64,000 nucleotides of DNA from Epiperipatus broadwayi (Eukaryota > Animalia > Onychophora): contig JAQFVV010000007.1 of NCBI GenBank assembly GCA_028023455.1, positions 17,856,001-17,920,000 on the forward strand. Direction: 5' to 3'. Both the position numbers and the translations under genes were made by a program. Positions 4,099 through 59,922 of this stretch are shown piece after piece. Numbering within the stretch: position 1 is the stretch's first letter; each line of letters starts with the position of its first letter. The notes beneath the pieces were generated by a model. The model ran no database searches. It saw only the letters and a program-made list of their open reading frames with translations, and was not told the DNA's origin.

Positions 4099-5290
4099 AA
4101 AACAATATCAGATTTTTCCACACAGTGGTGCCACCTACTGCAAGCTCTAGTAATAAATAGATAGTAGAAGGTTGTGCATTATAATTCCTATCCAGTGCCT
4201 ATCTTTCCAGTATTGTGGTTTCTAGCTTATCCATTTCATCAGTGAGGAACCTTGCACTGCATCACAGTCTTTGGATTGAATGCATTGCTCATGTATTCAC
4301 TTTATATCTTTTTGCTTAACTATAAAGCTATTAGTCTAAACTGAAAATCCAATAACATTTTAAGTCAAGCTATCACTTCTACAATCATATAGTTGTGAAT
4401 CTACCACTATATAGAAAACTGTGCTACTATTTTAACAGCTTTTGTAAGCATAAAAAAGTGATCACATGATGTTTTAATGGTTTAATACTAATCCTAGTCC
4501 AGATGTATTGGTGATTATGATTATTAAAAAATGAAGATTGCAAACTGGATTCAGACCTGTATGAATATTCTAGAGAATTAGTTTGGATTGAAAACCTTAT
4601 TACATTTGCAGTTTGGGCTAATGGCTTTACAATTAACCAAAATAATAAAAGGTAGTTGCAGGAGTGGTGCATTAGATTCACAGATCTAGATGCACTGCTC
4701 CCAGGTCCAAGGTTTCTCACTGATGAAAGCCATAAGCTAGAACTTGTTTCGGAATATTGGATAGGTAATCCTAGATGGGGACTCTAATGCACATTTTTCT
4801 AGAATATGTTGATTATTAGTGCAAGGTGGCAGTATTGTTTTAAAAAAATTGTACAATTGCAACAGATTGTGTAAGCATAAGAAAAGTTGATCATGTGATA
4901 CTTTAATGACTTAGTAGTAGTACTAGCCAAAGGGTAACAGTAACTATGATTATTAAAAAGTCAAATCACTAAAATATATAACATATTGGATTGAATTCAG
5001 ATCTGTATAGCTTGGAGGAAAACATTATTGTATGTTTTAATTTGAACTAATAGCTTTATAGTTCAAAAAAAGGTAAAAGGCGGAGTGCTGGAGAAGTGCA
5101 TTATATCCAGGGGCGCTGCTTCGAGGTCAAAGATCTTCATTATTAAAAGTCATATGCTTGGAACTAATCTGGGAATATTGGGTATGTATACATTGGATAG
5201 GGATTATAATACACAACCTTTTAGCATCCATTTATTACTAACACTTGCACTAGAGGACTCTATTGTGTGGAAATATTGACTACTATTTTG
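4099..5290. mobile_element. HHR repeat family A: antisense arm (4099-4375) plus two tandem sense units (4430-5290), older copies
   Basis: CTGATGAAAGCCATAAGCTAGAAC at 4720; decayed second core ~420 bp downstream at 5140; antisense core catcagtgagga near 4237. Confidence 0.75.
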
Positions 5291-8498: not shown

Positions 8499-9265
8499 AT
8501 CCAAAATAGTATTTAATTGGGTTACAAGTAAAGGGCAGGCAACAAGATGGGTGAGAAAGGTAATGCGGTATGCAGAAGATTTGGATAAAGAATTTATGTC
8601 AGTATACTTGTACAAAAGGTGGGATGATTGTATTAGGAGGATTGTTGAGTGCTATAGTGGTAAGAAGTGGGATAGAAGAATAGATGCATTAATAAAGAAT
8701 AGGGAGTTGGAGAGATGGAGAACTAGTATGGAGAGTAAAACGAGTTTAAATATATATAGAAGTAAACAGAACATTGGGTGTGAGTTAATTTATGATAATA
8801 GTAAAGAAAGTAGTTTATTGTTTAAGGCTCGAATGGGATCTTTAGCAACAAGGGAATATACATGTAAATGGAAAAATATGGGTGATTTAGTCTGCAAGTT
8901 GTGTAAGGAAAGCATAGAAAATATTAGGCATCTGTTACTTCAATGTAAATGCTTGAAAACAGAAAAGGTACAAATAATGAAGTTATGGAAGATTAAATAT
9001 GAACAAAGTGATTGTACAAAAAGTGAAGTGAGTTATTGGTTTTTATGCTAGGTTTGGGAAAAGATAAGGGGAATTTAGATATGAAGGTCATGGAGTTGAC
9101 AAAGATTATGTTGTGGAAATGGGATGGAGCAGATTATGGAAAAACTTAGGGTGGGCATGGAAAAGGAAGGTAAAGTGGCTAACAGGTTTCTCTGAGCATA
9201 GCTGCTGAGTGATTCCTGACTCCATTTAAGGAGAAGTCACAGTGCATCACATCATATCACATCAC
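8499..9265 (+). mobile_element. Non-LTR retrotransposon 3' fragment (copy A), C-terminal CCHC finger, (CACAT)n tail
   Basis: ORF 8551-9051 has CKLCKESIENIRHLLLQC; near-identical to 10155-10914. Confidence 0.85.
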
Positions 9266-10914
9266 AAGTTTTATAGATATAGAGAAGGCATATGATAAAG
9301 TAAATAGAAATAGATTATGGATAAGTTTAGCAAATTTGGGAATGGATGAAGCTTTAGTGGATGTTATTAAGAAATTATATGAAAATAATTACTATACATA
9401 TCAATTAGGGGATATAGAATCAATTAAAGTTAAAAATGGGGTGGGACTAAGGCAAGGATGCCCTATGTCACCTATTTTGTTTTTATTGTATTTGAGTGAA
9501 ATGGAGAGAGCAATAGAAAGACTAGGAAGAGGGATAGAGATACCATTAATAGCTGGCAAGGAAGTATATATATTGTCGGGTCTTTTTTTTGCAGATGATG
9601 ATTTTTTGTGTGCAGAAAGAAGAGGAGATATGGAAGTTATGCTGAGAACATTCGCAAGGATGGGTAAAGATATGGGGACTAAATTTAGTGAGAAAAATCA
9701 AATATAATGATGGTGAATACTGGGGAAGGAGAAGACAAAGATTTCTTATTGGGGGATATAAAGTTAAGTGTGGTGAATAGATATAGTTATTTGGGAATCA
9801 TCTTGAGCAATCAGAAAAATTGCTTGGATGAATGGGAGAAAAAATTGATAAATGAAGCAAAGAAAAGAAAGGGATTGATAAAGAAATTAACAGTATTTTC
9901 ATATAATAAATATGATGTAGCTAGAATTGTATGGAAGGGAGTGGCAGTAGCAGGGTTAACATATGGCAATGATGCATTATGTGTTAGTAAAGGGGTATTA
10001 GATTACTTAGAAAAGTACAAAGGAAAGTAGGAAGACATGTGTGGACAGCAAAGGAGGCAATTCAAGAAGAAATGGGATCATCAAGTTTTTATTTGAGAGA
10101 TGCAAAAAGCAAAATGAAAATATTTGGCAGATTGCAGTTTATGGATAATAAAAGAATAGCCAAAATAGTATTTAATTGGGTTACAAGTAAAGGGCAGGCA
10201 ACAAGATGGGTGAGAAAGGTAATGTGGTATGCAGAAGATTTGGATAAAGAATTTATGTCAGTATACTTGTACAAAAGGTGGGATGATTGTGTTAGGAGAA
10301 TTGTTGAGTGTTATAGTGGTAAGGAGTGGGATAGAAGAATAGATGCATTAATAAAGAATAGGGAGTTGGAGAGATGGAGAACTAGTATGGAGAGTAAAAT
10401 GAGTTTAAATATACATAGAAGTAAATGGAACATTGGGCTTGACTTAATTTATGATGATAGTAAGGAAAGTAGTTTATTGTTTAAGGCTTGAATGGGATCT
10501 TTAGCAACCAGGGAATATACATGTAAATGGAAAAATATGGGTGATTTAGTCTGCAAGTTGTGTAAGGAAGGCATAGAAAATATTAGGCATCTGTTACTTC
10601 AATGTAATTGCTTGGAAGCAGAAAGGGTACAAATAATGAAGTTATGGAAGAATAAATATGAACAAAGTGATTATACAGAAAGTGAGTTATTGGTTTTTAT
10701 GCTGGATTTGGGAAAAGATAAGGGGGATTTAGATATGAAGGCCATGGAGTTGACAAAGATTATGTTGTGAAATAGGATGGAGCAAATTATGGGAAAACTT
10801 AGGGTGGAGAATGGAAAGGGAAGGTAAAGTGGCTAACAGGTTTCTCTGGGCATAGTTGCTGAAAGATTCCTGAGTCCATATGAGGAGAAGTCACAGTGCA
10901 TCACATCACATCAC
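9266..10914 (+). mobile_element. 5'-truncated non-LTR retrotransposon (copy B): RT domain plus CCHC finger, with frameshifts and stops; clade not assigned
   Basis: FIDIEKAYDKV at the 5' end, GLRQGCPMSPILF, LFFADD, YSYLGI, CKLC..H...C; tail catcacatcacatcac. Confidence 0.9.
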
Positions 10915-30893: not shown

Positions 30894-31860
30894 GTAATGA
30901 TGTGTTATGTGTTAGTAAAGGGGTATTAGATTACTTAGAAAAAGTGCAAAGGGAAGTAGGAAGACATGCATTGGATGCAGATGTATGGACAACAAGGAAG
31001 GCAATTCAAGGAGAAATGGGATGGTCAAGTTTTTATATGAGAGATGCAAAAAGTAAAATGAAAATGTTTGGTAGATTGCAGTTTATGGATAATAAAAGAA
31101 TAGCCAAAATAATATTTAATTGGGTTACGAGTAAAGGGCAGGCAACAAGATGGGTGAGAAAGGTAATGCGGTATGCAAAAGATTTGGATAAAGAAATTAT
31201 ATCAGTATATTTGTACAAAAGATGGGATGATTGTGTTAGGAGGATTGTTGAGTGTTATAGTGGTAAGGAATGGGATAAAAGAATAGATTTATTAATAAAG
31301 AATAGGGAGTTAGAGAGCTGGAGAACTAGTATTGAGAGTAAAAAGAGTTTAAATATATATAGAAGTAAACAGAATATTAGGTGCAAGCTAATATATGATA
31401 ATAGTAAGAAAAGTAGTTTATTGTTTAAGGCTCAAATGAGATCTTTATCAACAGGAGAATATACATGTAAATGGAAAAATATGGGTGATTTAGTCTGTAA
31501 ATTGTGTAAGGAAGGAATAGAAAATATTAGACATCTGTTAATTGAATGTAAATGTTTGCTTAAAAACAGAAAGGACACAAATAATAAAGTTATAGAAGAA
31601 TAAATATGAAAAAAATAATTATACAGAAAGTGGATTATTGGTTTTTAAGTTGTGTTTGGGAAAAGATAAGGGAGATTTAGATATAAAGGCCATAGAGTTG
31701 ACAAAAATTATGTTAATGAAATGGGATGGAGCATAATATGGGAAAACTTAGAGTGGGAAATGGAAAATAACGTGGCTAACAGGTTTCTCTGGGTATAATT
31801 TCTGAGAGATTCCTGACTCCATTTAAGGAGAAGCCATAGTACATCACATCACATCACATC
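30894..31860 (+). mobile_element. Non-LTR retrotransposon 3' fragment (copy C of the 8.5-10.9 kb family)
   Basis: ORF 30902-31603 is homologous to 9970-10770; same (CACAT)n tail. Confidence 0.88.
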
Positions 31861-32104
31861 AATTGCTTTTAGAAGGCTTGTTGATAGATCAAAAAAATTT
31901 GTCTTTTATATTACTATGTATAAAGATGGCAGATGGTTCTTTTATTAATATACTTCACAATTTGAACCAGAATGTACCACATTAATATTACGGGAGAAGG
32001 GGCAAAGAATGTTAAATTATCACATGATCAAATATTGTGCCATTACCATCAGTAGTATCACAACCTGCCTTTGAACTACTAAATATCACATCATCACCAT
32101 TCTT

Positions 32105-32225
32105 TATGCTTGCACTAGATTGGGATTTTATTCACAAACCTTCCTGCATCCATTGATTACTCTGGTTTGCACTAAGTGGTGCTATTGTATTGAGAGTTTT
32201 GTCTATGTGTAACCTGCTTTTGATT
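32105..32225 (+). mobile_element. HHR repeat family A fragment lacking the core
   Basis: gcactagattgggattttattcacaaaccttcctgcatccattgattactctgg...gagagttttgtct. Confidence 0.8.
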
Positions 32226-32982
32226 GAAAATTAAAATACATTTTACATCACAACAGAATGACTTAAATTACTTATTTCATAATTATTCATAACAGTCTGA
32301 ACTTTAATTTATTTTTTGTAGAAATATTCCTATTTACTTTTATAGTTTAAAGAAAAGCTTTCAGAGGGCTAATTATATTTATACTGTCTGAGTAACCTGA
32401 TAGGTACTGTAGTAATTAGGATACTGTTAATATGATTTTGATAGTTGTTCTAGTATAGTAGTTTCATTATATATGACCTTATTCTGTTTTTATTCTGTAT
32501 TGTAAAATAAATAATCAAATGTGCAGTCTCATGTGGTGTTCAGCATCAGAAATAATATGTAGAGCTTCAATCTATGGCTCTTTAGATCTCAAAACCATTA
32601 CTCTACAACTGTTTTAAATCCCACTCAAATGTATCGGAAGTGACAGATGGTGCTTTAATGTGGAATATTTGATTTCAAATCTAGTATTTGATATTGTGAT
32701 AGACTATACAGGACATATATACTGTGTGTGTATGTAAGTATGTTTGCATACATATAGTGAAGTTACTATTGAGTTTCTCATCTCTAAATTCTACATTTTT
32801 CCTATTCTAATTTTTTCATTTTTATAGCTTTTATTACTAAACATCAATAAAATATCATTTTAAAATGGATACTACTGGAATTATTTTAATTTTATATTCT
32901 TCAATATATTACTCCAAAGTCCTATTATTTTTCTCACTTATACATAGATTCATTCATAATTTTAATTATTAGAAGTATCAAA

Positions 32983-33644
32983 ATAGGCAAACTTTCCATA
33001 CAGTAATGCCACTCAGTGCAAACCATAGTAATCAATGGATGCCAGAAGGTTTGTGCATAAAATTCCCATCAAGTGCCTACTCATGCAATATCCCCAGTTT
33101 AGTTTCTAGTTTGTGGCTTTCATCAGTGTGGAATCTTGAATCTGAGAGCACTGCACCTAGATTTTAGGATCTAATGCAACCCTCCAGCAGCCCCCTTTTA
33201 TCTCTACATAACTACAAAACTATGAGAATAAAATTAAAAACACAATAATATTTTCAAACTCATTAGCTTATGTAGTCATATAGGTCTGAACTCAGTTCAG
33301 TACCAATATATTTTGGTGTCTTTGGTTCTTTAATAACCATAGAAACCACTATTTAGGCAGGTTTGCTGTTAAACCACTAAACATCACATGTTCACTATTT
33401 CTTATGCTTGCTTATAACTGTTATTAAAGCAGCCAAAACTCTCCATATGGTAGTGCCACTCAGTGCAAGCCAGAGTAATCAATGGATGCCAGAAGGCTTG
33501 TGCGTAAAATCCCTATCTAATGCCTACTCATGCACAAGCCTTCTGGCATCCATTGATTAATATGGCTTGCACTGAGTGGCACTACTGTATGGAGAGTTTT
33601 GCCTATATAATAACAGTTATGAGCAAGCATAAGAAATGATGTGA
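32983..33644. mobile_element. HHR repeat family A: full ~445-bp antisense unit, tandem continuation, then fold-back
   Basis: aaact.tcca at 32990 and 33436 gives the period; inversion junction near 33520; antisense core tttcatcagtg at 33118-33128. Confidence 0.9.
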
Positions 33645-34097
33645 ATGGTATTTTTTCAAAATGACCCATCATCAGTTTGATTGCTTAGATTTCTCATTAG
33701 TAGATTTATTTTTGAAATGGTGGAATTCATCCACCTTATTTGTTATCATCCAATTCTTGTTTTTATCATCAATATTTTTCTAACATAATCCACTTTTTTT
33801 AGCAGGATCACCTCTTACCTTATGACCAAAATTATACAATTTCAGCCTTACTATTGTTTAGAAATGAAAGATCCAATCTAATTGGACTGAGTACTCTTTT
33901 TTTTTTTCATTTTCACATCATCGTACAAAATCATTAATAGCTCTTTTTATATTTGTTTGTTGTTCAACTTTCATATCTATAAGTTCACAGAAGTTTCCAG
34001 AAATACTATATCTTGAACAATTCTGATTATGTTATATATATATATAATTCAAATTTGCAAACATTTGTTCATCTGCATATCAAAGTGGTTTTTTTCT

Positions 34098-34485
34098 TAT
34101 ACAGAGGCAAAACTCTCCATACAGTAGTGCCACTCAGTGCAAACCAGAGTTATCAATGGATGCAGGAATGTTTTTACATAAACTCCTTATCTAGTGCCTA
34201 CTCATCCAATATCCCCAGATTTACAGTTTCTGGAGAGTTGCATTAGATCTTAGGATCTAGATGCAGTGCTTTCAGACCCAAGACTCTTCACTGATGAAAG
34301 CCACAAGCTAGAAACTAGTCTAGGGATATTGGATGAATACGAACTAGATACGGACTCTATGCACAAATCTTCCTGCATCCATTGATTACTCTGGCTTGCA
34401 CTGAGTGTTGATATTGAATGGAGAGTTTTGCCTCTGTATAAACAGCTTGTGTAAGTATAAAGAATAGTGATCATGTAATGCTTAT
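34098..34485. mobile_element. HHR repeat family A fold-back
   Basis: 34098-34225 is the reverse complement of 34315-34440. Confidence 0.9.
34278..34332 (+). ncRNA. Type I minimal hammerhead ribozyme motif
   Basis: TCTTCA CTGATGA(34291-97) A AGC CACAA GCT A GAAA(34311-14) CTAGTC|TAGGGA; predicted GUC cleavage after 34320; one mismatch in stem I. Confidence 0.7.
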
Positions 34486-34944
34486 TGGTTTCTTTCTTTT
34501 TTATAACCCTAATGCTAAAGCTATGTTTGTGGTGAACATCATCAAAAGTTCACTTAGCATTAGAATATAAAAAAGAAAGGAACCACATTGATACACAGAT
34601 GAACAAGTATTTATAAATTTGAATTACAATTACAAACTAAAGAAAAAATCAAAATTATATATTGATTAATTTAAAGATTTGAGATTAAGACGTAAAAATA
34701 ATGTGGAATTTTTTTAATGTAATAATCTAGATTAAATTTCTGCTATGATATAACTAAGTAGGAATCAGTTAAAACTGGCAATGTAAGTTGAAATCTTTTA
34801 TCTATTAATAGCTATAATATTGGCCGCATCTACATTAAGCCAAAGTGAAACTGCTTTTGCCTTAAGCTAATATAAAACCACTATAAACCAGACATAAGAT
34901 ACTTTATATATCCATGCAAATCATTAAATTAGTATACATGTTAT

Positions 34945-35835: not shown

Positions 35836-36114
35836 TATATAAAAATATAAGGATGAATCTTAAAAAAATTATAGGACTATATTAGTAATCTATTAATTCA
35901 AAGTGAATGTTATATTTTCAGAGTCATTAATATAGATTTTTTATCAGCCATTCCTATATAATTATGGGCATTCTAATATCAGACCAAAAGACAATGGTAA
36001 GAAGGCAAAATCTAAAAATTTAAACATGAGTTTTGGACTAACCATGCAAAATAACTCTTGAACATGAATATATATATAATATCCATTAATTAAAAACAAT
36101 ATTGTAATTATAAT

Positions 36115-36454
36115 TGAAATAATATTTTTAACAGTTTACAAACAATTACAAAGAATCCTTAAATCCACAGAGGTACTTTCAGTTACTTTCTAACCTGCCT
36201 CAACTGCCATTAAATTTTCCGGTTACTTTCTAACCTGCCCCAACTGCCATTAAATTCAAAAACCAAAAGCGGAAGCAAATGTCATGACGTTTGCTTCCGC
36301 TTTTGGTTTTTGAATTTGAATTGATGACGTTTGCTTCCGCTTTTGGTTTTTGAATTTAATGGCAGTTGAGGCAGGTTAGAAAGTAACCGAAAGTACCTCT
36401 GCAGATTTAAGGATTCTTTGTAATTGTTTGTAAACCATTAAAAATATTATTTCA
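36115..36454. mobile_element. 340-bp loopless palindrome; fold-back of a PLE 3' tail (family C) with hammerhead-like motif
   Basis: Centre gtca|tgac at 36284/36285; arms homologous to 57365-57495, directly downstream of the GIY-YIG ORF. Confidence 0.8.
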
Positions 36455-38569
36455 TATATATATATATTCACAGTGATGATCTATTATTTTTAATATCTAT
36501 CTGCATGAAGTTTTCTTATCTTCACAAAATAGATTGTTTAGCATTGTATCCAACAACTGAAGACCATACCAGATTGGTTTATGATCCTGTCATATATTTT
36601 TATACTTTTATGGATATTCTAAAGTAAAAATTTTCTGATGTTTTGTTGTATATATAGATAGTAAGTTTAAGTCTTATTTTTATATAATAAATAACAAAAT
36701 AATAGCTTTGTAACTCATTTAAAGTATAATTTCTCCTATTCTTATTTGCACAACCCTATTGACAATTTCGGTCATATTTTCTTTTTTGGTAGTGATCATA
36801 ATTTTTGCCTATCCATAAAAAATTTTGAATAAAATATTTTTTATTTGAATTCCATTTTTGAAATGAAGTTGAGACATCACAAAGAAATGAAAATATGACT
36901 TAAAATTCAAATTAAACTAATTTCTTTACTAGTGTTTATGAAAGTTATTATTATTCATCAATAAAACAGTTTTCCCATTATTATTATTATTGAAAATTAC
37001 ATTTTTTTTTTCGAAAATACTAAACATCAAATCACTTCTGAGATGCCTCATATCAAATAATCTACTAATCAGTGACATTACTGTTTTCTTTGTATTATGG
37101 TACAACCAATTGGCACTGTCAGCTTAGTGTTATATTTAAATTGATGTTGATATTTGTATGAGGTTTATATGACACTGATATTTTCAGAATTTTTTGTAAA
37201 GTAATAATTTTAGTTTCTGCACAAAAACAAATGAGCACAGTAACATTTTAGATAACTACAAAATAGCAAATAAAAGCTGAAAGCAATAACATCACCATCA
37301 TCATCATGCCCCAAATATTTCAAAATTAATGAGAAAGTTGCTGACTTTCCTACCACTTGATAAACATCTAATTTAACTGCAATAGTTATATCACTATGAA
37401 AAAATTGTATAATAAAATATCCATGTCACTTAGTAATTACGATTTGATGCTCTGGTCATCACGGATCAAAGTTTGATTCCCCACAAAGATAATTATGATT
37501 TTTTTCTTAAGAAGTTGGAAGTCGGCATATATTTATAAAGCTTTGTTTTCATTTAATTTTAATTTATATTACGAATCAATAATATTCATGTTATATATAT
37601 ATATAGAGAGAGATATTAAATAATTGTACAGATCACTTTGGAGTTTTAACTATATACTCAATTTTTATCAGAATCTTAAAAACAATAAAATTTAGGATTT
37701 AAATAGCTTAGTTCCAGACTGAAAGCCAGAGTAAACCATCCAAACAATTATACAGTCCAAGAATTCAAAGAACCAAGTAAAGTTGTTTTATTTCTGTTTG
37801 TGGGAGGGGGCAGGTTACTATATATTTGATTCCAAGATAACGCATTTCTCTTATTTTAATGCATTATACTGACTTTTGCCTCAGCATTTTATCGCGTGTG
37901 TGTATGCGCATGCTGTGTTATTTGGATTGAAAAAACTGAAAAAATTCGCTTACACGTTAAAATAACGTTAAATTATTATTTTTAGATATGGACAAATAGG
38001 CATTATTTATATTAAATTTCATGATAAATCATAATAATTGAATGATATCCCATCCTTCAAAAATAAATAAATAGAAGTTATTTAAATTAATTTTTTAATT
38101 ATATCCACATTTTTTTTTATTTATAAATTTAATGTAATTGTTTATTTTGTGTAATATATTATTCATTTCGTGACCTTCCCATATCTTTCTCTCTACCTTT
38201 TGTGTGCTTTTTCCCTCTCTGTGTATATATATATGTACTCAATGTGTGTGTGTATTGACAAATTTATCTATAAATTTGAACATGGATTTTCAGTTTAAGA
38301 ATTCTTTCATTTTCTATATGCATAAACAATATTTGTAGTTTAACTTTAAAATTACACTCTTAATAAAAATATATGCTTGAACGAAAGTTGAATAAAAATT
38401 ATTGTATAATTAAATTAATTTATCAATTACAACCCCATTATTTTAATATAATTGTTTATTTGTGTAATATATTATTTATTTCTCTCTTTTCTTTCTCCTT
38501 TCTTCTCCCCATCTACATATATATATATATATTAAAATAAATTTTTTTATAAACATTAGATATAAGAGA

Positions 38570-41585: not shown

Positions 41586-42167
41586 TGATTTATGATAATA
41601 AATTTGAAAGTAATTCTTGTCAATTTCAACTATAAGATATTCATGCACTCTGCTTATTCTTTCTGCAATTAATTACACAATTTGCAACCTCTTCTATGTC
41701 TGTTATCAATGCAACTATTATACATCTAGAAACAGTTATCTCATTTTATTCTAACATTACTGCCGCTATTTTTAAGAATTTCTCATATATTCTGGAGCAA
41801 TACCCATGCAATTTGCTCAGCCCTTTTTCTGATAGATGTGATGTTTTATTTCTCAAAAAATTAATTGCTTTAACTCTTAATAAAAATAAATATTAAAACT
41901 CTGGTTCTCTAAAGTACTCTGTGCAACTAAAACACACACAAATCAAAGTTTTTGTGAAAGCTTTTTAAAAAAGGATTGAATCCTTTTTTTAAGTTTAAAC
42001 TTCAGTTGTCTATGTTCTCCTTTCAGGATGAATTATGTGGCCTGCAATACTAGCATTGCACTACATAGAATAATTTTATCATCTCTATTTCTTGCTGAAT
42101 TTAATTATAAATATGTTTCAAATAACTCCATGAAGAAGAGTTCTGTGTAAGCAAACATTTTATTCTT

Positions 42168-42484
42168 ACATCACATGATCATCATTTCATATGCTTACAC
42201 ATGCTGTTAATAAGAGTATAAAATTCTCCATATAGTAGTACCACCAAGTGCAAGCCTTCATAATCAATGGATGCAGAAGGTTTGTGCATAAAGTCCTTAT
42301 CGAGCTCTCACTTATCCAACACCCCCAGACTTCTCACTGATGAAATATACAAGCTAGAAACTAGTATGGGGATGATAGATGAATAGGCACTAGATAGAGA
42401 TTTTATGCACAATCTTTTCTGCATCCATTGATTAAGAAGGATTGCATTTGGTAGCACTATGGGATGGAGAGTTTGAGTAATAAG
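42168..42484. mobile_element. HHR repeat family A fold-back with degenerate TSD
   Basis: CTGATGA at 42337, GAAACTAGTA-TGGGGA at 42357-42372; flanks ttttattcttaca (42158-70) and ttttatttctaca (42485-97). Confidence 0.88.
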
Positions 42485-44234
42485 TTTTATTTCTACACAA
42501 GGCATCTTAGCATTTAAAGCACCATTACACACACACTTTTTACAAAATTTTAATTACTGAAGTGTAAGCCTAACCATGTAGAATATATAATAAAGATCGA
42601 AATGAAATTTTTTTTTTGTAAATATTCGTATTGCCAGTAATTTTATTGCTATATATGTATATGTGTGTATATATATATGAAATTAGAATAAGCACAAAAC
42701 TGTATTGGAAATAAATATAGAAAAGTATGCACCACCCACCTACTTCTAAATTTTTCAGCAACGAAGTAGCCAAAAAATCTTGACAAATTGTGGATTATTT
42801 TATAGTCACACTCTAAAATAAATCCATACCACATGGGCATTAAAGATGCAGTTTGTTGGACAATTTAGAATTTAGAACACTCCAAGGATAAAAATGGTTA
42901 TGGTATTACAAATAAATCCTATTCCAATCTAAATGCATTGATAAGATTTGGTTTTTTTTTTAAAAAAAAGAAATTATTGCCACTCTTAGTAGATTTTAAA
43001 ACTTGTTAAATACTTAAGTAGTAATCTGGATTTTTAAGCTGGTCGGTTATGGGGGTGATGTATTCCTCTTTAAAAATGTGTTATTGATAAAATCTGTTCA
43101 TGGTGTTATTAATGGGACTATTTGCTAGACCATATATTTTTAATAAAAAAATAATTGAATTATTACTTGCATCATAGGTCATGTGATATCAAATAATGTA
43201 AAGAGAGAATGAGTTTCAATCCAGCAAATTTATTTTTTTGATTCATCGCTCTAACACTATGTTAAATTTCAGAGGGCTTTGTGGCCTTCTCTGCTGTTCT
43301 AAATGAATAAATAAAAATGGACCTTTTTAGCAATATTTGGACTTAATAGCATAAGTTAAATAATTGATGAAATACATAAAAATAATTGGTGGAATAAAAC
43401 TACAAAATAAATAATCTGATCATTGCAGTCAATTTAAAACTTTTTTGATGAATTGATACTAATATTTAGATTTGGAAAAAATATTATAGTCCAATAAATC
43501 TATGTCCTCTAATATATATATATATATAATACATAAGTATTAGTATAGTGATGAAAAGTGATACACTTTGGGATTCTAGGTCTACGATTGTTAGAACTAC
43601 GTCACTTCCGCTTATTGAACTTTTTGATCAACAATTCATTTGATTATACATATGTATGATAAGGTGATATTTTGATTAAATGGTGATAGTGTTTTGATTA
43701 TTTCTTGAATAATTTTGTAAGCTAAACTAATGCTACATACCAAGTTACTGATCAAATGGTTTGAATCCAGTTGAAGCAAGGATATTAACATATTACTGAA
43801 CTTTTCATATACATACTTTTTATGCCACTTAAGAATTTCAAATGTAGATTTAATTGTTAATGGAGATTTTTTTTTTTAAAAAAAAAGAATTCTGTGATTA
43901 TTAAGTTATGCCAATGCCATTATTATGTTGAAAACACCTTATGATAAACACAGTTTACTTAGTCTGCTTAAAAGAAAAGGAAATACTAGAGGAAGTGTAT
44001 GCTGATTCTACACTATTGATCCTATCAAGTCACTTGCTGATTTGGTTTAATTTCTACAGAGAGGTTTGCTTGTGAAATCACTTCCGTTCAAAATGGAGGA
44101 AAAATAGCAAGTATACATAAAAAATTCATCTAAATAGACTAAGCCAGGTTAACCAGTCACCAGAAGCACAATTGTAGCAGGATACTGCAACGTGACTAAC
44201 ATCCACATCACAAGATATCTCCATTCATGCTGAG

Positions 44235-48220: not shown

Positions 48221-50497
48221 CTTTCAAAAATGAAAAATGTAATTGAATTTATCATTATTAATCATCATCATCATCATCATCAATCATTATCAATCCCACT
48301 GCAGGATGGTTTCTCCAAGTTCAGCCCATCTCTGATCTCTAGTCTCTCTTCTCCATATTATCTCTGCACACTTTCTTATTTTTTCCATCCATCTCATATG
48401 TGGCTTCTTTTTGGATCTTTTACAATCTCTTGGAATCTATATTAATATTTCAATTTTCCATCTATTATCATCTCTTATAGCAGTATGTCCGGTCCAACTT
48501 CACTCCAGTCTATTAATTCTTTCAATGATATCAGTAACACCTGTTTGTTCTCTTACCCATATATTGCATTTTTGATCTCATCTTTTTACTTCTAATATGC
48601 AACTCTCCCTACTTCTTTGAGTGATCTGAAGTTTCTGTATTGCTCTTCTATTAACTGTCCAAGTCTCAGATCCATAAGTAAGAATAATAAAACACATTTA
48701 TTAAAAGCTTTCTCTTTCAAACACATAGGCATATTTCCTTTTGACATTAAGTTATTTCTAACAAAAGCACTCCAACCAAATTTAATCTATGATTAATTTA
48801 ATCCATTATGTTTTCATCTGTAGTAATAATCTGACAGAAATATCTGTAGTTTTTAACTTCTTCTAACTTATCATTATCAATCTTTATTTTCAGCATTTGA
48901 AAAAATCCATTGAACATTACTTTAGTGTTTTTAATGTTTTCATTTAGTCCTACTTTCATTAAAAAGACTAAAGTAATGTTCAATGGATTTTTTCAAAAGA
49001 TGAAAATAAAGATTCATCTGATAACTCTTGCAACCTTTCCTGATGCGCTGAAGCATTATTTGCAAAAACAACTACATCATCTGCAAAATCTATATGATTT
49101 AAATAATTTCCATTTACTTTTATTCCCTTTAGCTTCTCATTTTAATCCAAAAAATATTCCTTGTAGCATTGCTGTAAAAAGTATTAGAGACTTGGAGTCA
49201 CCCTGTCTTACATCCTTCTCAATATTAACCTTCCTAATATCATTATGTAATATAAGGTTTGCTGTTGTATTTTTATAAATATTCTTCAAAATATGACAAT
49301 ATCCTGAGTCTAGATCCAATGTTTTAATCATTGAAGAAATGCTTATAGAATTAAATGCCTTTTCATAGTTTACAAATCCAAAGGATAATGGCAACTCATA
49401 TTCATTGGTCCTTTCTATAGTTTCTCTCAATACTTGGATATGATCTACTGTATTAAAACCACTTTTAAATCCAGATTGTTTTTTGGTTAGTTGAAATCTA
49501 AAGTTCTCTGTAGATAAGTTATAATTATTTTGGTAAAAATTTTGTATAAAACTGATAATCTGTAATTTCTAATATCTTCTTTATTATCTTTCAAAAATAG
49601 AATATTAATACTGCATTTTTCAAATGGTACATCTTTATTATTTAGATATTTGGTATATAACTTGGCCAAAAAATTTTCTATTTTTTCACCTACTTCTTTT
49701 AAGATATCGATTATAGTTCCATCATTACCTAAAGCTTTTTCCTTCTTCATAAATTTAATTGCATGTCTCACTTCTTCATTTAAAATCCTGGGCAATTCAG
49801 AAGATATAACAGTTGTAGGAGATATTTGTTCTTTATTACCATATAATTTTTGATAGAACTCTTCTACCCATTTTATGATGCCATCTCTCTTTTAGTAATA
49901 GTTCCACCTTTTTTTATTGCAGACAGAATTTTCTACCAATATCAAAATATTGTTTTATACATTTGAAACTTTTATTTTCTTCTATAGCTTTCCTTGCTAG
50001 TTCACAGTTATACTTTCTTATATCATTATCAATTCTTTTTTTTACACCATTTACAAAATTCAAAACATTCAATTCTTCTTAATGCATCATTTTTATATAT
50101 TTTCATATTCCTTTTTTTCTTCATAAATTCTCTAGTCTCAGTAGAAATTTTATTGGTCAACTGCAACTTTTTTCTACCTTTGTTGTGATTTTTTTAAAAG
50201 TATAACAGTTATTTTTCTATTGATTTCATTCAAATCTGAATCATGTTCACAAACTGCTAATATTTGAATATGATTTGCAAGTTCTAATTTAAATTCATTA
50301 GGATGTTTCTGAAGATTAGTAATATCAACTATGAATATTGTTTTTCTTAATAATTTGTGCCTCTTTAGTTTTGCATTAACACATATCTTACATTAAAACA
50401 GGCAAAACTCTCTATATGTATTGCCACTCAGTGCAATCCAGAGTAATCAATGGATGCCAGAAGGCTTGTGCAAAAAATCGCCATCTAGTACTGACTC

Positions 50498-50556
50498 ATC
50501 CAATATCCCCAGACTAGTTTCTGCCTTGTGGCCTTCGTCAGTGAGGAGCCTTGGAT
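50498..50556 (-). ncRNA. Type I minimal hammerhead ribozyme motif (antisense arm)
   Basis: Reverse complement: ATCCAA-ggc-TCCTCA CTGACGA AGGCCACAAGGCA GAAA CTAGTC|TGGGGA-ta-TTGGAT; stem I fully paired. Confidence 0.75.
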
Positions 50557-50600
50557 CTGAGAGCACTGCACCTAGATCTTAGGAAGTTCAGTACTCTCAG

Positions 50601-50659
50601 ATCCAAAGCTCCTGACTGATGAAGGCCACAAGCCAGAAACTAGTCTGGGGATATTGGAT
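50601..50659 (+). ncRNA. Type I minimal hammerhead ribozyme motif (sense arm)
   Basis: CTGATGA(50616-22) A GGC CACAA GCC A GAAA(50636-39) CTAGTC|TGGGGA; predicted cleavage after 50645. Confidence 0.72.
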
Positions 50660-52089
50660 GAGTAGGCACTTGATGCAGATTTTATGCACATGCCTTTTGG
50701 CATCCATTGATTACTCTGACTTGCACTGAGTGGCAATATGTATAGAGAGTTTTGTCTGTTTTAATAACAGTTATAAGCAAACATAAGAAATGGTGATCAT
50801 GTGATATCTTACATTCAGTAATTGATAATTACTTCCTGTGTTGAAATTTATTAAGAACATTGCAATCTTGAAATATGTATTTTCTATTAATCAAAATATT
50901 ATCCAATTCTGCTGCATCTTCATTTGGATGCTTTAATGTCTACTTCCTTTTAACATTTTTTTCAAAAAAAGAATTCATAATATAAAGTTCTTCTTTTTCT
51001 GCAAACTCCACAAATCTATGTCATCTCTCATTTCTATTACTACAATCAAATTTACTTACAGCACTTTCATCTTTCAATTGTTTACCAATTCTAGCATTAA
51101 AGTCTCCCACAACAATTTTAAAATGTTTGGTCTGATCAAATGCCTTTTGTACATCCATATAAAATTCCTCTACTATTTCATCATTATGAAAACTTGAAGG
51201 GACATAAACCTAATAATAATTCCAACACAATTGAAATAAAACAACTATATAAAAATAAATATTTCCTTTATTATTTATGTTTGACCACTGTTAAGGATTA
51301 AGGGCATAAACCTGAAATATATGCATTTTGCATCTGCTATTTAGTTGAATAATTAATCTTGCCATTCTGTCTGATAGACTATCAATCTTCACAGTGTTGA
51401 TCTACTATGTATTTATAATAAATCCTATTGCACTTGTTCTTTCAATATTTGTGCCTTTATGCTAGAGAACATGTCCACTTTTTTAATCAATTGTCTCATC
51501 TTTTCTTTTTACTTCACAAAGTCCAGTAATATCCCATTGAATATGAGATAGTTCTTCCAATTCTTGCAATCTTCCTTCACTTGAAAATGATCTGCAGTTG
51601 TAAATACCTAATCAAAGGTCATCATTGAATGGCAGCTTGGGTTCACAATCAGGGGATTCTTAGCATCCTCCAACTTTGGCCATCATGGCTGCTTTGGCTG
51701 GTCACTTTACAGCCTCTTGGAAATAAGGGTCATAATTTATTTTTGTCTGTAATGATTGTAAATGTCTATTAAAAAAAAATCATTCACATACATGTTTATT
51801 CTATCTTATCAGGCAATTAAGAAGAAAGTTCATGATGTTTCTTGATCTTAAGTTTAGAAGTAAAAAGCCAATAAACTTACCACACTGGCTAATGTATGTT
51901 GGTGAACAGTATATCAGTGTTCTTATACAATAAGTATAATCATATTGTAATAACAGCTGCAATGACAAGAATGTATGGAGTGGATATTAGGAATCTGCCC
52001 TGTTTGGTTCTGTTAATGCCTCCAAGAGAAATCAAAGGGTCTCCTTTCAGTTAACAGAAAACTCTTTTCTGCAACCACCATTATCAATA

Positions 52090-52810: not shown

Positions 52811-53472
52811 TGCAAAAACAATTATAATCTAGATGACTTAGTCTCCATATATTTTTAAAATGTACCACAACTAGCTTCAAAGTAGATAGATAGAAATCAA
52901 TCATTAAAATAAATATAGAAGAAGTTTTTATCATAATAATTTAGTTGCTTGGGAGGTCAGATGAGAAAATTCTATTCAATCGATCAGATGGGGGGGAGAA
53001 CATAATTTAGATTTATTTACTATTAAAAAACAATTTATTAAAGTTATGAGTGGGCGAATAAACAATTGTTTTTTTTATTACATTAATAAATGAAATTAAT
53101 AGTCTAAAAATGACATCATAACAACGGAAGTGATGTTTCTTATTTGAAATAAATTTTTTCATTTTCAAATTAAGAAAAATCTGTTAACGATGTTAATCTA
53201 TAAAAATAGTTACAGCTGTTGGAGAGCGTTTGATAAAGGTTGTTTATAATATAGATTTTCCAGAACTGACAGTAAGTTAAAGACAATAGATTTATTTGGA
53301 ATTCAATAATTACAAAAATTAGTTTATGGATTAATTAAATGTATTCATTTTAAATTGTAGCTTAAAAATAGATTTATGTATTTAGAGCAAGGAAAACCGT
53401 TTATTTGTTTTGCTGTTCTCTGATTAATATTTTATTCAACATCTTCAATTCACAATCATATTAAAATAATAG

Positions 53473-53679
53473 TCCACTAAACATCATATGATCACCTTTC
53501 TTTTTGCTTACTCAAGCTGTTTACACAGAGTCAAAACTCTCCATAAAGTAGCGCCATTCTGTGCAAGCCAGAGATGAATAGGCACTAGATAGGGATTTTA
53601 TGCATAAACCTTTTTGCATCCATTGATTAATCTGGCTTGCACTAAATGGTGCTACTGTAAGGAGAGTTTTGCTTCTGTG
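53473..53679. mobile_element. HHR repeat family A fold-back (core deleted at the junction), 11-bp TSD
   Basis: TAAAATAATAG at 53462-72 and 53680-90. Confidence 0.88.
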
Positions 53680-54195
53680 TAAAATAATAGGCGTTAATAT
53701 TTATAAATAAAGCACATTATATTTTAGTGTTTACTATATTTGTCTGTTTTGAATATGAACTCGGAATTGAACCAAGATGACAGTTTCTTCAGGTAACTTT
53801 TTAAGCAAGTTTATACCTTTATTAGGTTAGCTAACCCACAATCAACTTAGCTGAATATTCAATGGCAAACAACTATGGACATATAAGTTAAGGAAAAAAA
53901 TAGATGAATATTAATACACTAGAGATAAGTTTGTGATGACTATACAAATGATTTCTACAAATATAACCATATGTAGAAGACTCTAATTCATTATCCTATA
54001 TATTTGATTATGTTGACTTCTTTTGGAACAATCTTTCTTTATGGAATAATTCAACACTATATGTAATTGCTCCAATGTATTCTATCATCTTCCAATAAAA
54101 ATGATAACCAATCAATTTTTTTTAGAAGTTCTTTGAGATAATCTTTATAATTTTATCAGAGATCTGCCTCTCTCATGATAAACATGCTCAGGTTT

Positions 54196-54557
54196 CATAT
54201 ATATATATATATTTCTTATAATACTTCTTTCATATACACTTCAATGCAAACAAATTTTCTTAAAAAACTTCTTTATTTTTCTTACAGTTTTGACTGTCCA
54301 GCAGTCTTTGTCAGAGCTTATCAAACTTTATCTGTTTTAAAAGTAAATTTGGAAAAAAAAAAAGGTTACTTTTAAAGCAGAGGAAGTTTGATAAGCTTTG
54401 ATGAAGATTGCTGGACAGTCGAAACTGTACGGAAAATTTAAAAAGTTTTTTAAGAAGATTTGTTTGCATTGAAGTGTATATGAAAGAAGTATTACAAGAA
54501 ATATATATATATGAATATATGAAGATATGCAAAAAAAGTAAAAGAGAAGAATAAGAG
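54196..54557. mobile_element. Second HHR family (B) fold-back with ~15-bp TSD
   Basis: Right arm TTGATGA A GATTG CTGGA CAGTC GAAA CTGTA (54398-54429); left arm reversed CTGACAA A GACTG CTGGA CAGTC AAAA; flanks aacatgctcaggttt (54181-95) and aatattctcaggttt (54558-72). Confidence 0.8.
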
Positions 54558-55479
54558 AATATTCTCAGGTTTACTATATAATACTCTTTTAGAATATCTT
54601 GTATCATTAATTTCTTTCATTTGCCTCATGAAGATGTGATTTTACAATAGTAGATACTATAATACCACATTCACCAAGTTAAAGAACAAATTGATTGGTC
54701 TTATAATTTACCATTATAATTTTTAAAATGTTAAGAGCAACCTTAAATACAATTTTTAAGATGCTTTTAAATTATCTCCATAAGATAAACCAAGACTCAC
54801 TTTCATAGAATAAATTAAATAATAACCCTATATACAACTAATTTTATTGCTGTTACTATTTTACTGTGATAAAAATCCATATTTTTCATTATTATACCCT
54901 ATTTTTATAGCAGTAAAAGTACCATATGGATCTAAAATTTAATAACACACTCCCATTAAATTAAAAAATGTTACTGTTATATATAATAATGGTGTGATAT
55001 TTTAAAAAGATAAAAAAAATCTTTTGAATAATAATACAAGAATTCAGATTGTTGCTTTAAATATATTTTTCCTTTTAATTTATTCAAATTTGGAAAAAAA
55101 AACATCCAGCTTAATCTTAAAAGTTGAAGGATTATTAGTCCTGATGATACAATGTTAAGACATTAGAAATGACAGTTTGAACTTTAATTTAAAAACATTT
55201 ATCAGGTTAGTAGTCCATCATTCTATTAATGTACTCAACCCTGAATCATTTATGATAATTATCTAGCTGAAGGCAGCAATATTTAAATAATAAAATATTA
55301 TGACTTAGCAATAACACTTGATCATTTTCATTGGTAGTTTGTTATGGCTTTTTTATGAGATGCCTGGAAAATGTTCAAAATATGATGATCATATGGCAGT
55401 TTCAAAAATAGTCAAATTCTTTTAAAAGTGCATAGCCTCATGAAATTATGCCATCGGCTGTGAAGATGCTTTTATTGTT

Positions 55480-56500: not shown

Positions 56501-57364
56501 GATGAGAGGGGAGATTCTCACTAGTGTCATAAAAATAATACACTGAAAAGAAACTAGACAATCCTCTTTTTTTTAAAAAAGTGACTAAACCTCAATGTGG
56601 TTTAATAACATTCAAATTCAGACTACAAATGATATCTCATACCACTCATTAGATATGTATTTGTTTTAGATTATTATCATTTCAAATTTAATGTTTTTAA
56701 TAAGGATTGTTTATATAAAGTATTAAATTATCTGTATAAATTTTTTTAACATATAGGCAGAAAATAAAATAAAATTATCTTTGTTTAACTAGATTTAGTT
56801 GACAGATTTTTATAACTAGTTGATTGCTTTTTTGTAAATAGTGATTTTAATAAAATAAATTTGCTACTTAATATTGTTGCCATTAGTTACAACACATTTT
56901 ATTATATTTCTTTTTAAAAAGTAGCACTTAAGCTGTCAATTAAAAAAGATGAATTTTTTTAGCCAAGTCTAAACTACAATTGGTGTATGGTACCACTAAA
57001 ACTGATAGGGAGGCATATAAAATTAAAACTATATGAGCTAAATTCAAACTAACTTGAGTTTTATAAAAATGTGTCACACCTAGGAAGGTACTAAGAGGGG
57101 TATGTTTTCAATTTAAAAATATGAAATTAGGGTATTTGAAAATTGGTTGTTGTATCATATACCATTGTTGTTATTGCAGATTAATTGAGTAATTGAAGTA
57201 CTAAACTGGTTTTCCAAACACAAACATGTAAATGAAGATCACACATAAAATGGATGAGATGAATGTATTTGCTGTGGAAAATAAAAGCCATGGTGTAGAG
57301 AAACTGAATTAAATTTTCTGTTGTTTTACAGGGTGTTGATGATTATATACATATAAACAATAAA

Positions 57365-57910
57365 AATAATATATATAATGGTAATTAATTATTATATACA
57401 GTCTTTCAATCTGCAGAAGTACTTTTGGTTAATTCCTTAATTAACTGTCATTAAATTAAAAAAAACAAAATGGAAGCAAATGTCACCAATTCAAATTCCA
57501 TGAATTCTGAATTTTAACATTAACAGCTTGTCTATTAATTATATTCATTTTATTTCTATTTATTAAAATTGTCTCCTTAATTTTTCTTTCATTATGGTTT
57601 CTCTTTTCATGAAGAATCTTCACACTTTGAAGATCAAACTTAAATTTATATTTACATGTTCTTTTATGATCCAAGAAAATTGAAGCAGTCATTAATTCAT
57701 TATTATTTTTACTTTTCACACTCTTGTATAACAATTCATGCTCCTTTAATCTTTTCTCAATACTGCATCTCGATTCACCTATATATGATAACATACATCC
57801 ACAAAAAATTTGATACACAACATTACTTTTTTGCTTGACAGAAATGACACTTTTAGAATTATTCACTAACTTATTAATGTTATTTGTAACACAAAATGAA
57901 ATATTGAACA
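57365..57910 (-). mobile_element. Penelope-like element 3' portion: GIY-YIG endonuclease ORF plus tail
   Basis: KSNVVYQIFCGCMLSYIGESRCSIEKRLKEH...DH...KILHEKRNHNERKIKETILI is the PLE-type GIY-YIG with CCHH residues; frame open to 57483. Confidence 0.85.
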
Positions 57911-58928
57911 TATCCTTATATATATATATCCTTATAAAATTTCTCCTGAGCATAATTTTTAATTAACAGATATTTTATTTGTATTAAATATAAATATCAT
58001 TGAAAAACAGTCAACATTTAGACAATCCCAATATCAATAACAGTGAAATTGTTTATTGTTATTGATATTGGGATAGTCTAAATATTGACTGGTTTTTAAT
58101 GATTATTTACAAACCCATTTAGCATTAAGCATTATTACACTCACATATATAACACTTCCATAAATAAAAATGGATATTAATATATAACTGAGAATTAATA
58201 AACATTGCAAATAACATTCTCTCATATCATTGCAGTCCAGTAATCAGATGAAAAATAATCTTTATCTGGTCTCTAAGATCTTATGTAGTGAATAGATTAA
58301 ACATTATTTTATTGGGTTAGTGATCTTAGTAAAGTCTTAATCTTAATCTGATTGATTTATAATTTCAGATCACTACTTTTATAATATATAAAACCTATAA
58401 TATAGATAACTTATATGATTGACTATTGTATAAAATTTTACAGATCATATGAAGATTGATTTATTTTTCTTCCTGAGATGGGTATTGTATTAATATGAAA
58501 AGATGTTATTTGCAATTAAAAATGACTCTATAAATATTTGTTTCATTTCTTTTACCAATTATAACCCAATGTAGGCATGTTTTATGTGTTTCGTAAGAAA
58601 AGATTATATTTAACCAAAGTTTATATGCTTGGCATGCTTTCAACTATTACAAATCATAATCATGGCATAAATTATCTAGTTTATATTTTCACTAGAGTAT
58701 TTAAATATCACTCTATTATAATACTATTTACTCATGGAAAATTAATATTGCTATGATTATGACTATGAAATAGTTGAAAGTATGCTAATTTTTGTTAAAT
58801 ATAATCTTTTTTTTTTTTTACGAAACATGGAAAATGTGTTTACATTGAGTTAAAAACAACTCTATAAAGTCTGGCTTTTAAAAAATCTTATAATGTGTGG
58901 ATTTGAAGAATATTACTTCATATTATGG

Positions 58929-59450
<522 letters not shown>

Positions 59451-59510
59451 GTTGCCATAAAAGTTTTTATAGATATCAAATGTGTTTTTGGTCTTAACTG
59501 TGTTTGAGAT

Positions 59511-59616
59511 GTCTTGCATTGGTGTTCGAGAGGTCAGCGCGACTGCCTTGCACTTGCAGGCAGTTGCCCGGGTTCGCGTCCCGGCCGATGCTATGACATT
59601 TAAAAAAAAAAAAAAC
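59511..59616 (+). mobile_element. Short tRNA-Gly-like SINE with poly(A) and 13-bp TSD
   Basis: CTGTGTTTGAGAT at 59498-59510 and 59617-59629. Confidence 0.88.
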
Positions 59617-59922
59617 CTGTGTTTGAGATCAGGTATAAAGAATATCATTTAAAGAAAAGTCAATCCAGAAAAAGATTCTCATAGCTACTGTGTGAATATT
59701 TTTTTTATGCATAGTAACACTTGAAAAAATATTTGACATATAATATATATAGTATATTTAGTTTTTTTAGTTTCCTGTTTGTAATCGTTTAGATTAGGAC
59801 AAAATTTAGTCCTTGAACACTTCTCGGATTCATAAGTATAACTCTGCTCTGTGACAATGATGTGTTAATGTCTTTTTTTATTACTGATTTGTGTTCTTTA
59901 CTTTTTTCCTTTCTATTTTTAG

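Follow-up and report, generated by a model that had tools for sequence, protein, structure and literature searches.

A non-coding repeat with a predicted hammerhead motif, inserted head-to-head in a decayed LINE, with the footprint of a Penelope-like element insertion

The fold-back within the LINE

The 64-kb window, i.e. the whole stretch of DNA analysed here, contains a decayed LINE on the minus strand, of which RVT_1 pieces (48983-49568) and an AP-endonuclease-like GDFNA piece (51024-51209) can be recognized. This element is interrupted by a 409-bp hairpin (50395-50803, referred to below as H50) composed of two inverted arms, in which positions 50383-50571 pair with 50586-50774 at 87% complementarity around a 14-nt spacer. 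A preliminary description of this DNA had placed the hairpin between perfect 12-bp repeats inside a LINE, and we could confirm this, the repeat ATATCTTACATT matching at 12/12 positions on the two sides. A paralogue of the LINE at 45.7-46.2 kb, approx. 75% identical, is colinear across the H50 site with no insert and carries a single ATATTTTATTAATT at the site matching the H50 target. The empty site that had been proposed as a check is therefore found as a LINE copy, not as an allele. In addition, we compared public contigs over 49600-51600, and in contigs from three DNA runs position 50393 is joined directly to 50844; as the LINE and the inserted repeat are both extremely repetitive, this comparison shows insert-free LINE copies and does not reach the level of alleles.

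Both arms of H50 belong to a non-coding unit of approx. 460 nt (family A), which is found as fold-backs and also in tandem. The sense strand of this unit has no open frame of more than 58 codons, and its longest frames are antisense (approx. 60-79 codons). Contigs of family A occur in an RNA run, a result that concerns their presence only. The left arm of H50 has a tailless outer end, its sense sequence ending in ...GAGAGTTTTGCCTGTTTT, whereas the right arm ends with the tail (...GGTGATCATGTG), and the inner joint falls within a natural near-palindrome of the family-A unit (CCTAAGATCTAGG). Each arm bears a predicted hammerhead motif, with the core CUGACGA on the left and, on the right, helix I, CUGAUGA, a 3-bp helix II (G-C where the family has A-U), GAAAC and a palindromic ACUAGU before the predicted cut. 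This motif was assessed by hand and by pair counts: its register is 83.8% paired, compared with at most 44% when the partner is slid, the covariation not going beyond that of shuffles, and position 10.1/11.1 is A/A. Rfam, at the gathering threshold and at E values up to 10, detected no hammerhead and returned only chance microRNA-like matches on the hairpin, and folding of the tail plus linker RNA gave no significant structure (z = -1.2). H50 is thus an old, single insertion in which a small non-coding repeat with this motif is present as two head-to-head copies.

Table 1. Coordinates of the LINE, of H50 and of other family-A copies in the window
Feature	Position	Strand	Remarks
Head-to-tail tandem of older family-A units	4553..5273	+	460-nt spacing (4553/5013)
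Fold-back H32	32062..32223		12/13 duplication at 32062/32211
Composite fold-back	32978..33649		1.4 tandem minus-strand units plus a short sense arm
Fold-back H34	34086..34498		12/13 duplication TGGTTT(T/C)TTTCTT at 34086/34486
Fold-back H42	42158..42496		weak 10/12 duplication at 42158/42485
Decayed host LINE (AP-endonuclease-like piece, then RT)	48983..51209	-	hosts H50
Left TSD copy, ATATCTTACATT	50383..50394		single copy in LINE paralogue
H50 left arm, antisense family A	50395..50578	-	profile columns ~122-315
H50 inner head-to-head joint	50566..50585		~1 nt filler
H50 right arm, sense family A	50579..50803	+	profile columns ~135-357
Predicted minimal type-I hammerhead, H50 sense arm	50599..50662	+	motif by hand
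H50 tail, ~40 nt	50765..50803	+	one arm only; between the family's two 3'-end zones
Right TSD copy, 12 bp	50804..50815		
Fold-back H53	53462..53690		11/11 duplication TAAAATAATAG at 53462/53680

Duplications, ends and arms of the family-A fold-backs

Flanking repeats were scored against 3000 random pseudo-loci, for which P(score ≥10) = 0.006. This score was reached by four of the 11 loci, with repeats of 11-13 bp (null P ≤0.006 each), and weak repeats flank three further fold-backs; overall, the whole insert is bracketed at 4-7 loci. The duplications around H34 and H32 are additions to the list in the preliminary description. Among the repeats already listed there, that at 53462/53680 was recounted at 11/11, and that at 42158/42485 is present, but as a weak match of 10/12 and not 11/13. 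A match of 14/18 at 60343/60574 was not reproduced; the repeat at 60340/60570 matches at 12/16 by eye and at 10/13 for the candidate duplication, which is weak (null score 7). No duplication was visible at the young fold-backs at 11.4, 29 and 30.5 kb (H11, H29 and H30), of which the last has a tail that seemingly continues into the linker, making its true end uncertain, and the search at the old copies H4, H17 and H40 gave nothing above chance.

All fold-back counts given here come from this one window (n = 11-13). The inverted junctions of family A number 13 head-to-head and 0 tail-to-tail, in agreement with the constant polarity originally claimed, and all young insertions of the family in the window have the fold-back form. 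The outer ends form two classes, at columns 314-328 of the family profile (with overruns in two alignments, which reach 337 and 343) and at columns 362-376, such that in 11/11 informative fold-backs one arm carries a tail of 40-55 nt and the other ends just before it. The hairpins are consequently not symmetric, the tail on one arm being absent from its partner. In H53 the tailed arm is the left, antisense one and the right, sense arm is tailless; the left arm is likewise the tailed one in H42, with a tailless right arm, and H34 has the tail on the right and a tailless left arm. The inner joints are precise, with an overlap of -1 to +9 nt that is mostly 0-5 nt, so the short microhomologies reported for them are borne out. 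The two arms overlap in nine of the 11 fold-backs, and the tailless arm extends further 5' than the tailed arm in ten. The tailed arm of H11, like that of H32, consists of the tail only and stops just short of the other start zone; the left arm of H32 is an inverted tail of approx. 36 nt and its right arm a tailless body (columns 218-323), with no overlap between the two.

The 460-nt period is seen at 4553/5013 and again at 33.0-33.5 kb. The latter is a composite fold-back, in which a tailless minus arm running from 33535 down to 32978 is joined head-to-head to a tailed sense arm (33530-33649); two separate insertions at this place (S33.0 and H33) were considered and rejected, as both form one tandem arm. 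Tandem units with this period show that the template is a longer, repeating one, with the tail and the start sites in its interior.

The arms of H50 are 88.2% identical with each other and at most 84.4% identical with any other arm. Across the fold-backs, partner arms have more derived bases in common than non-partner pairs (Mann-Whitney p = 5.6e-6), and a comparison of arm with arm, proposed earlier as a check, finds partners to be closest relatives, i.e. sister tips on the tree, in five of the seven testable pairs (chance approx. 0.03 per pair). In H42 these sister tips have four private bases in common, and in H34 the variant GCCTCTGTAT is common to both arms. The statement that the arms of one hairpin share locus-specific variants therefore stands as an excess of common derived bases, but few of these are strictly private, most recurring in some other family-A copy. 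Together, the bracketing repeats, the paralogous empty site and the sister relationship of the partner arms indicate that each fold-back is a single insertion event, as had been suggested. The accompanying suggestion of one template for both arms may also be right, but common variants would likewise be expected from two RNAs of one source locus or from conversion between the arms.

Insertion mechanism and alternatives

The preliminary description had noted a resemblance to the inverted pLTRs of Penelope-like elements (PLEs), and we find more than a resemblance, as no part of the published footprint is missing: there are a 5'-truncated copy in head-to-head orientation, a tail on one side only, 3' ends of two classes, tandem units and a predicted hammerhead motif. 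In addition, a coding Penelope fragment in the window forms the same kind of fold-back as family A. This GIY-YIG fragment (57483-57953) is missed by Pfam, even at E = 10, and was classed as PLE by the motif VVYQIFCGC...YIGES and its ESM Atlas neighbours; a fold-back at 36.1 kb is the 3' end of the coding PLE endonuclease fragment (57364-57498). Within the window there was no autonomous PLE whose terminal repeat resembles family A, and searches with the family-A profile and tail matched family-A copies only and not the window's sole PLE fragment.

On this evidence, family A was most probably moved in trans by a PLE reverse transcriptase/GIY-YIG endonuclease, through fold-back insertion primed from two strands. 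Two staggered nicks some 11-13 bp apart in AT-rich DNA would give rise to the later flanking duplication, and the 3' end of each nicked strand would prime reverse transcription inside the RNA. One strand would start in the downstream zone (...CATGTG to GTTTAGTGGTT), so that its arm retains the tail, and the other 40-55 nt upstream (...GTTTTGCCT to AATAAC), giving an arm without it. The two cDNAs would then converge, stop early (5' truncation) and join at 0-5 nt of chance homology. In the expected product the left arm is antisense and the right arm sense, both 3' ends point outward and there is a single tail. In vitro, the PLE start site showed no difference between the two strands (PMC11167929), a result that lends the one-tail rule no direct support.

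Several other origins have been weighed. A self-priming (snap-back) route, in which the 3' end of one cDNA folds at a small palindrome and copies itself, with endonuclease trimming leaving a one-sided tail, would produce sister arms automatically, and the H50 joint does sit in a near-palindrome; self-priming from palindromes at inverted junctions was proposed in PMC3846280, and endonuclease-mediated resolution was suggested for the tail in PMC8557442. Most joints, however, are asymmetric by 40-330 columns, and the tailless ends are concentrated within 7 nt, a zone in which tandem arrays end too, as a start site predicts. The tail-only arms of H11 and H32 share no homologous columns with their partners, so neither arm copies the other and snap-back copying is ruled out as their source; for the family as a whole we regard this route as unlikely.

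Inverted arms of constant polarity within a flanking duplication also have the look of a DNA transposon of the fold-back or MITE type, in which long terminal inverted repeats are combined with variable internal deletions, but the outer termini are unlike each other (tailed and tailless, on either side), the units also occur head-to-tail with a 460-nt period, the inner ends result from truncation of a linear unit, which occurs at many positions, and the duplication has no fixed length (11-13 bp). As the predicted hammerhead motif and a coding PLE 3' end of identical architecture moreover point to reverse transcription, such a transposon is extremely improbable. Only slightly less remote is an origin from a SINE-like RNA through twin priming driven by a LINE, or from two insertions that took place independently and whose arms later underwent conversion. 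LINE reverse transcriptases are abundant in the window, and H11 and H32, with their non-overlapping arms, resemble classic products of this process. In L1 twin priming, which Ostertag and Kazazian are said to have described in 2001, both target strands reportedly prime on the RNA to leave an inverted 5' segment, the whole insert being flanked by a duplication, the inner joint showing microhomology and the arms coming from different parts of the RNA, the second priming reportedly taking place at random microhomology. The non-overlapping layout is common to these products and to H11 and H32, but in family A both primings would lie in fixed zones near the 3' end, and the arms usually overlap to make a hairpin; furthermore, all insertions rather than a minority are inverted, the 3' end is neither poly(A) nor LINE-like, and the only matches to the tail within the window are family-A copies. 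Two separate insertions are excluded by the duplication around the whole fold-back.

Within the preferred reading of PLE-driven, two-strand-primed insertion, both arms may tentatively be viewed as copies of a single RNA molecule, made by two reverse transcriptases for which the two target strands serve as primers at neighbouring start zones, the downstream (tailed) enzyme trailing, although we hold this to be somewhat less probable than its alternatives combined. It would account for the single tail per insertion (11/11), the tailless arm reaching further 5' (10/11), the tail-only arms of H11 and H32 and the sister partners.

Relation to known elements and significance

PLE insertions with an inverted pLTR, a 31-bp one-sided tail and a duplication round the whole insert were described by Arkhipova et al. 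2013 (PMC3846280), a tail at one end was also reported by Craig et al. 2021 (PMC8557442), and Frangieh et al. 2024 (PMC11167929) showed that PAc nicks and extends both strands, and that the two sites at which it starts are internal and enclose the tail. Family A has in common with endonuclease-positive PLEs the head-to-head 5'-truncated inverted copy, one-end tail, whole-insert duplication, partial tandems, AT-rich targets, a predicted hammerhead motif and two internal reverse-transcription start sites. It differs from published PLEs in having no ORF and a length of only approx. 460 nt, in its duplications (11-13 bp, compared with 8-10 bp reported in Adineta), in its tail (approx. 40-55 nt, compared with 30-40 bp) and in that all its insertions in the window are fold-backs, a form that the literature describes as occurring 'often' in PLEs. 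H50 is a clean example of the published PLE insertion footprint, and its structure is one already described, not a new kind.

Circular RNA intermediates are a defining feature of retrozymes. Animal non-LTR retrozymes (Cervera & de la Pena 2020, PMC7229834; Li et al. 2026, bioRxiv 10.64898/2026.07.22.740005) are, like family A, small, low-GC, non-coding and tandem, with a type-I hammerhead (a predicted one in family A), duplications of >4 bp and a proposed dependence on PLEs. These papers deal with tandem arrays and circular RNAs and leave inverted copies and tails unmentioned, whereas the dispersed copies of family A are fold-backs, and the predicted family-A hammerhead is of the minimal Penelope type missed by Rfam, unlike the retrozyme case. 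In Schistosoma, pairs of minimal hammerheads that lie 100-700 bp from each other on opposite strands represent the same observation for motif pairs and were ascribed to truncated PLEs (Cervera & de la Pena 2014, PMC4209133); that study contains no analysis of duplications, tails, joints or arm relatedness.

As the structure is a known one, the value of fold-backs of the H50 type lies in data rather than in discovery. The published papers on PLE integration call the tandem and inverted structures and the tail unexplained steps. Short non-coding fold-backs preserve both ends, the arms and the joint of one event within 200-400 bp, and very many are present in the genome. Those of family A are direct evidence that hammerhead repeats of this type take the Penelope route of insertion, with RNA in linear or tandem form as the source. 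Counted in large numbers, they could reveal whether use of the two start sites is coupled between the DNA strands, a point beyond the reach of the pooled in-vitro products (PMC11167929). If both arms are indeed copied from one RNA by two reverse transcriptases, the fold-back would be an obligatory and not an occasional product of integration in this lineage, and the small non-coding copies would be single-event records of Penelope integration.

The H50 hairpin and its host LINE

The preliminary description placed the fold-back H50 (50383-50815) inside a LINE between perfect 12-bp repeats, and this is borne out by the inverted arms, both copies of the repeat and the LINE flanks. These flanks, in a window of 28% G+C, belong to a decayed LINE on the minus strand. 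At 45.7-46.2 kb, a ~75% identical LINE paralogue is colinear over the insertion point and carries a single copy of the site (ATATTTTATTAATT) without the insert. In addition, position 50393 is joined to 50844 in public contigs of three DNA runs, which therefore represent further LINE copies lacking the insert. These data show that the hairpin is an insertion and that the 12-mers are its target-site duplication.

Contigs over 49600-51600 were also compared for depth. In organism A the summed depth of the family-A arms is ~10 times that of the flanking LINE, whereas organism B, represented by four small DNA runs, has lower depth over the arms than over the LINE. This contrast gives a hint, on the poor measure of contig depth, that family A expanded in a lineage-specific burst.

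Coordinates of features in the window
Feature	Position	Strand	Details
H50 inverted arms	50383-50571, 50586-50774		87% complementary, spacer 14 nt
H50 flanking 12-mer	50383-50394, 50804-50815		ATATCTTACATT, both copies present
Host LINE, RVT_1 fragments	48983-49568	minus	
Host LINE, AP-endonuclease-like piece	51024-51209	minus	contains GDFNA
Further LINE fragments	8551-10491, 24198-26233, 30902-31603		RVT_1, zf-RVT, endonuclease-like; zf-RVT ORF at 30902 adjoins the H30 fold-back
Antisense open frame of family A	50397-50579 (+), 50575-50760 (-)		same frame in copies at 33.0, 34.3, 29.1, 30.8 kb
PLE endonuclease ORF	57483-57953	minus	motif VVYQIFCGC...YIGES
tRNA-Cys(GCA), ARAGORN call	59516-59592	plus	in region with long minus-strand open frames (58913-59648)
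Perfect repeat	near 58.93-59.0 kb		translation IYLS

Arms, ends and duplications of the family-A fold-backs

The two arms of H50 are 88.2% identical to each other, compared with at most 84.4% for either arm against any other copy. Across ten fold-backs, derived bases were shared more by partner arms than by 322 non-partner pairs (p = 5.6e-6), and in a tree of 23 arms with eight cherries, partner pairs formed cherries in 5/7 cases (chance ~0.03 per pair). The named variants, said to be private to the arms of one hairpin, were found in the alignments of H50 (GGCCTT, CTCTCTATA and ATTGCC, the last accompanied by a shared 1-nt deletion) and H30 (CTAA), but ‘private’ was too strong a word, as most variants shared by partners also occur in some other copy. 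Together with a duplication around the whole, these results support a single event for each fold-back; conversion between arms is possible but not needed.

The window has 13 inverted family-A junctions, all of them head-to-head, with the antisense arm on the left, the sense arm on the right and the 3′ ends pointing outward; tail-to-tail junctions are absent, in keeping with the constant polarity proposed earlier. All young family-A insertions of the window take this fold-back form. The 5′-truncated arms meet, again as proposed, at short microhomologies, the inner joints being precise with overlaps of 3, 3, -1, 0, 5, 2, 9, -1 and 4 nt; that of H50 falls within a near-palindrome native to the unit. 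At the outer joints, 0-6 nt (by eye) are assignable to duplication or template alike.

The outer ends fall into two classes, according to whether a tail of ~40-55 nt is present. Tailless ends (...GTTTTGCCT to ...AATAAC) occupy profile columns 314-328, apart from two alignments that run on to 337 and 343, and tailed ends (...CATGTG to ...GTTTAGTGGTT) occupy columns 362-376. With the piece at ~33.0 kb treated as a tandem continuation of the left arm of H33, each of the 11 informative fold-backs has one tailless and one tailed end; six carry the tail at the left and five at the right. The tailless arm extends further 5′ in template coordinates in 10/11, a trend that is weaker when taken by cDNA length. 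The tailed arm of H11 and of H32 is the tail alone (columns ~333-372), and because it ends shortly before the other start zone is reached, there is no overlap between the arms.

Flanking repeats were scored against 3000 random pseudo-loci, with abutment within 10 nt as a requirement, where a score of 10 or more has a probability of 0.006. This threshold is reached by H50 (12/12), H53 (11/11), H34 (12/13) and H32 (12/13), giving clear duplications of 11-13 bp. The repeats claimed earlier for other hairpins thus stand for H53, whereas those of H42 (10/12, against the earlier 11/13) and H60 (10/13 for the candidate duplication, against the earlier 14/18) are weak, as is that of the H33 composite at 32978-33649 (7 exact), each with a score of 7 (P ~0.1). 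By the same null, no duplication was seen at H11, H29 or H30.

Three insertions (H32, the H33 composite and H34) lie within 2.4 kb at 32062-34498, H32 and H34 each with its own clear duplication and the composite with only the weak 7-nt repeat, a clustering that points to a local hotspot or to nested targets. At 54181-54580, a repeat family unrelated to family A has a fold-back that adjoins (AT)n and is flanked by a 23-nt direct repeat (83% identical); this seems to be a second family with the same insertion format.

The family-A unit

A profile made from window copies found 29 family-A pieces in the window. The sequence that precedes the apparent 5′ ends shows the unit to be circularly continuous: the 3′ tail leads through a ~85-nt linker into the following unit, and the units repeat with a 460-nt period at 4553/5013 and at 33.5-33.0 kb (minus). 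Family A is therefore a ~460-nt repeat able to stand in tandem. Its sense strand has no open frame above 58 codons and carries a putative minimal type-I hammerhead motif, comprising helix I in two parts, CUGAUGA, helix II of 3 bp and GAAAC, with palindromic ACUAGU replacing helix III. The proposed pairing is in register, with 83.8% of cells paired, compared with at most 44% for a slid partner; covariation in these decayed copies does not exceed that of shuffles, and the motif was undetected by Rfam search. A compensated A-U to G-C change in helix II is common to both arms of H50 and was present in the source of the insertion. An antisense frame of ~60-79 codons (...LPLSASQSNQWMPEGLCIKS...NIPRLVSSLW...) is kept in 7/9 copies despite 15-20% divergence, probably by chance in a unit of higher G+C than its surroundings.

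Proposed insertion scheme and the Penelope link

In the best-supported reading, staggered nicking would occur at an 11-13-bp spacing, each 3′ end would prime on RNA at its own start zone, and the two cDNAs would be joined at a microhomology. This scheme predicts the observed polarity, duplication, single tail and truncated inner ends. Pure snap-back copying is argued against by the non-overlapping products of H11 and H32, which argue for two primings. Twin priming as in LINEs is unlikely, because family-A ends have no A-tail and no LINE 3′ end in common, and because the inversion is universal in the window. A DNA transposon with terminal inverted repeats was rejected, since it does not account for unequal outer ends, for units in tandem or for inner truncations at varying points. 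Of the earlier proposal that inversion arises during integration from one template, the single event is supported by the data; from 11 loci in one window we infer that both primings of the dual-priming scheme plausibly took place on one RNA.

The suggested likeness to the inverted pLTRs of PLEs (Penelope-like elements) is upheld by the literature and by the window itself. The family-A footprint is that published for PLE insertions (PMC3846280, PMC8557442, PMC11167929): an inverted pLTR completes an insert flanked by a 9-bp duplication, where one inverted pLTR bears a 31-bp tail and the inverted junctions contain palindromes (PMC3846280), and an inverted 5′-truncated copy occurs with a 30-40-bp tail, often at one end only (PMC8557442). 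Both DNA strands are nicked and extended by the purified PAc protein, which initiates reverse transcription from two adjacent internal start points that enclose the tail (PMC11167929). In the window, the closest ESM Atlas clusters to the endonuclease ORF, undetected by Pfam search, are eukaryotic GIY-YIG/HTH_animal/RVT_1 proteins (score 0.96). A young palindrome at 36109-36460, within an (AT)n microsatellite and with arms 94-97% alike and internal 40-nt direct repeats, matches the last codons and 3′ UTR of this fragment (57364-57498), so that a coding PLE in the window forms the same fold-back as family A. Just upstream of the ORF in the element's sense, a palindrome of ~110 nt (57991-58109, 85% complementary) may be the head-to-head joint of this truncated PLE copy.

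Minimal hammerhead pairs on opposite strands, 100-700 bp apart, have been reported (PMC4209133), and dependence of retrozymes on PLEs has been proposed (PMC7229834; 2026 preprint); inverted copies or tails are not described in the latter two papers. The H50 observation is confirmed and its interpretation supported: the family-A fold-backs show the insertion footprint known from Penelope, here in a small, non-coding repeat with a hammerhead motif. Our data go modestly beyond the cited papers in that the fold-back is universal in the window, the rule of one tail per insertion holds throughout, and tail-only inverted arms exist.
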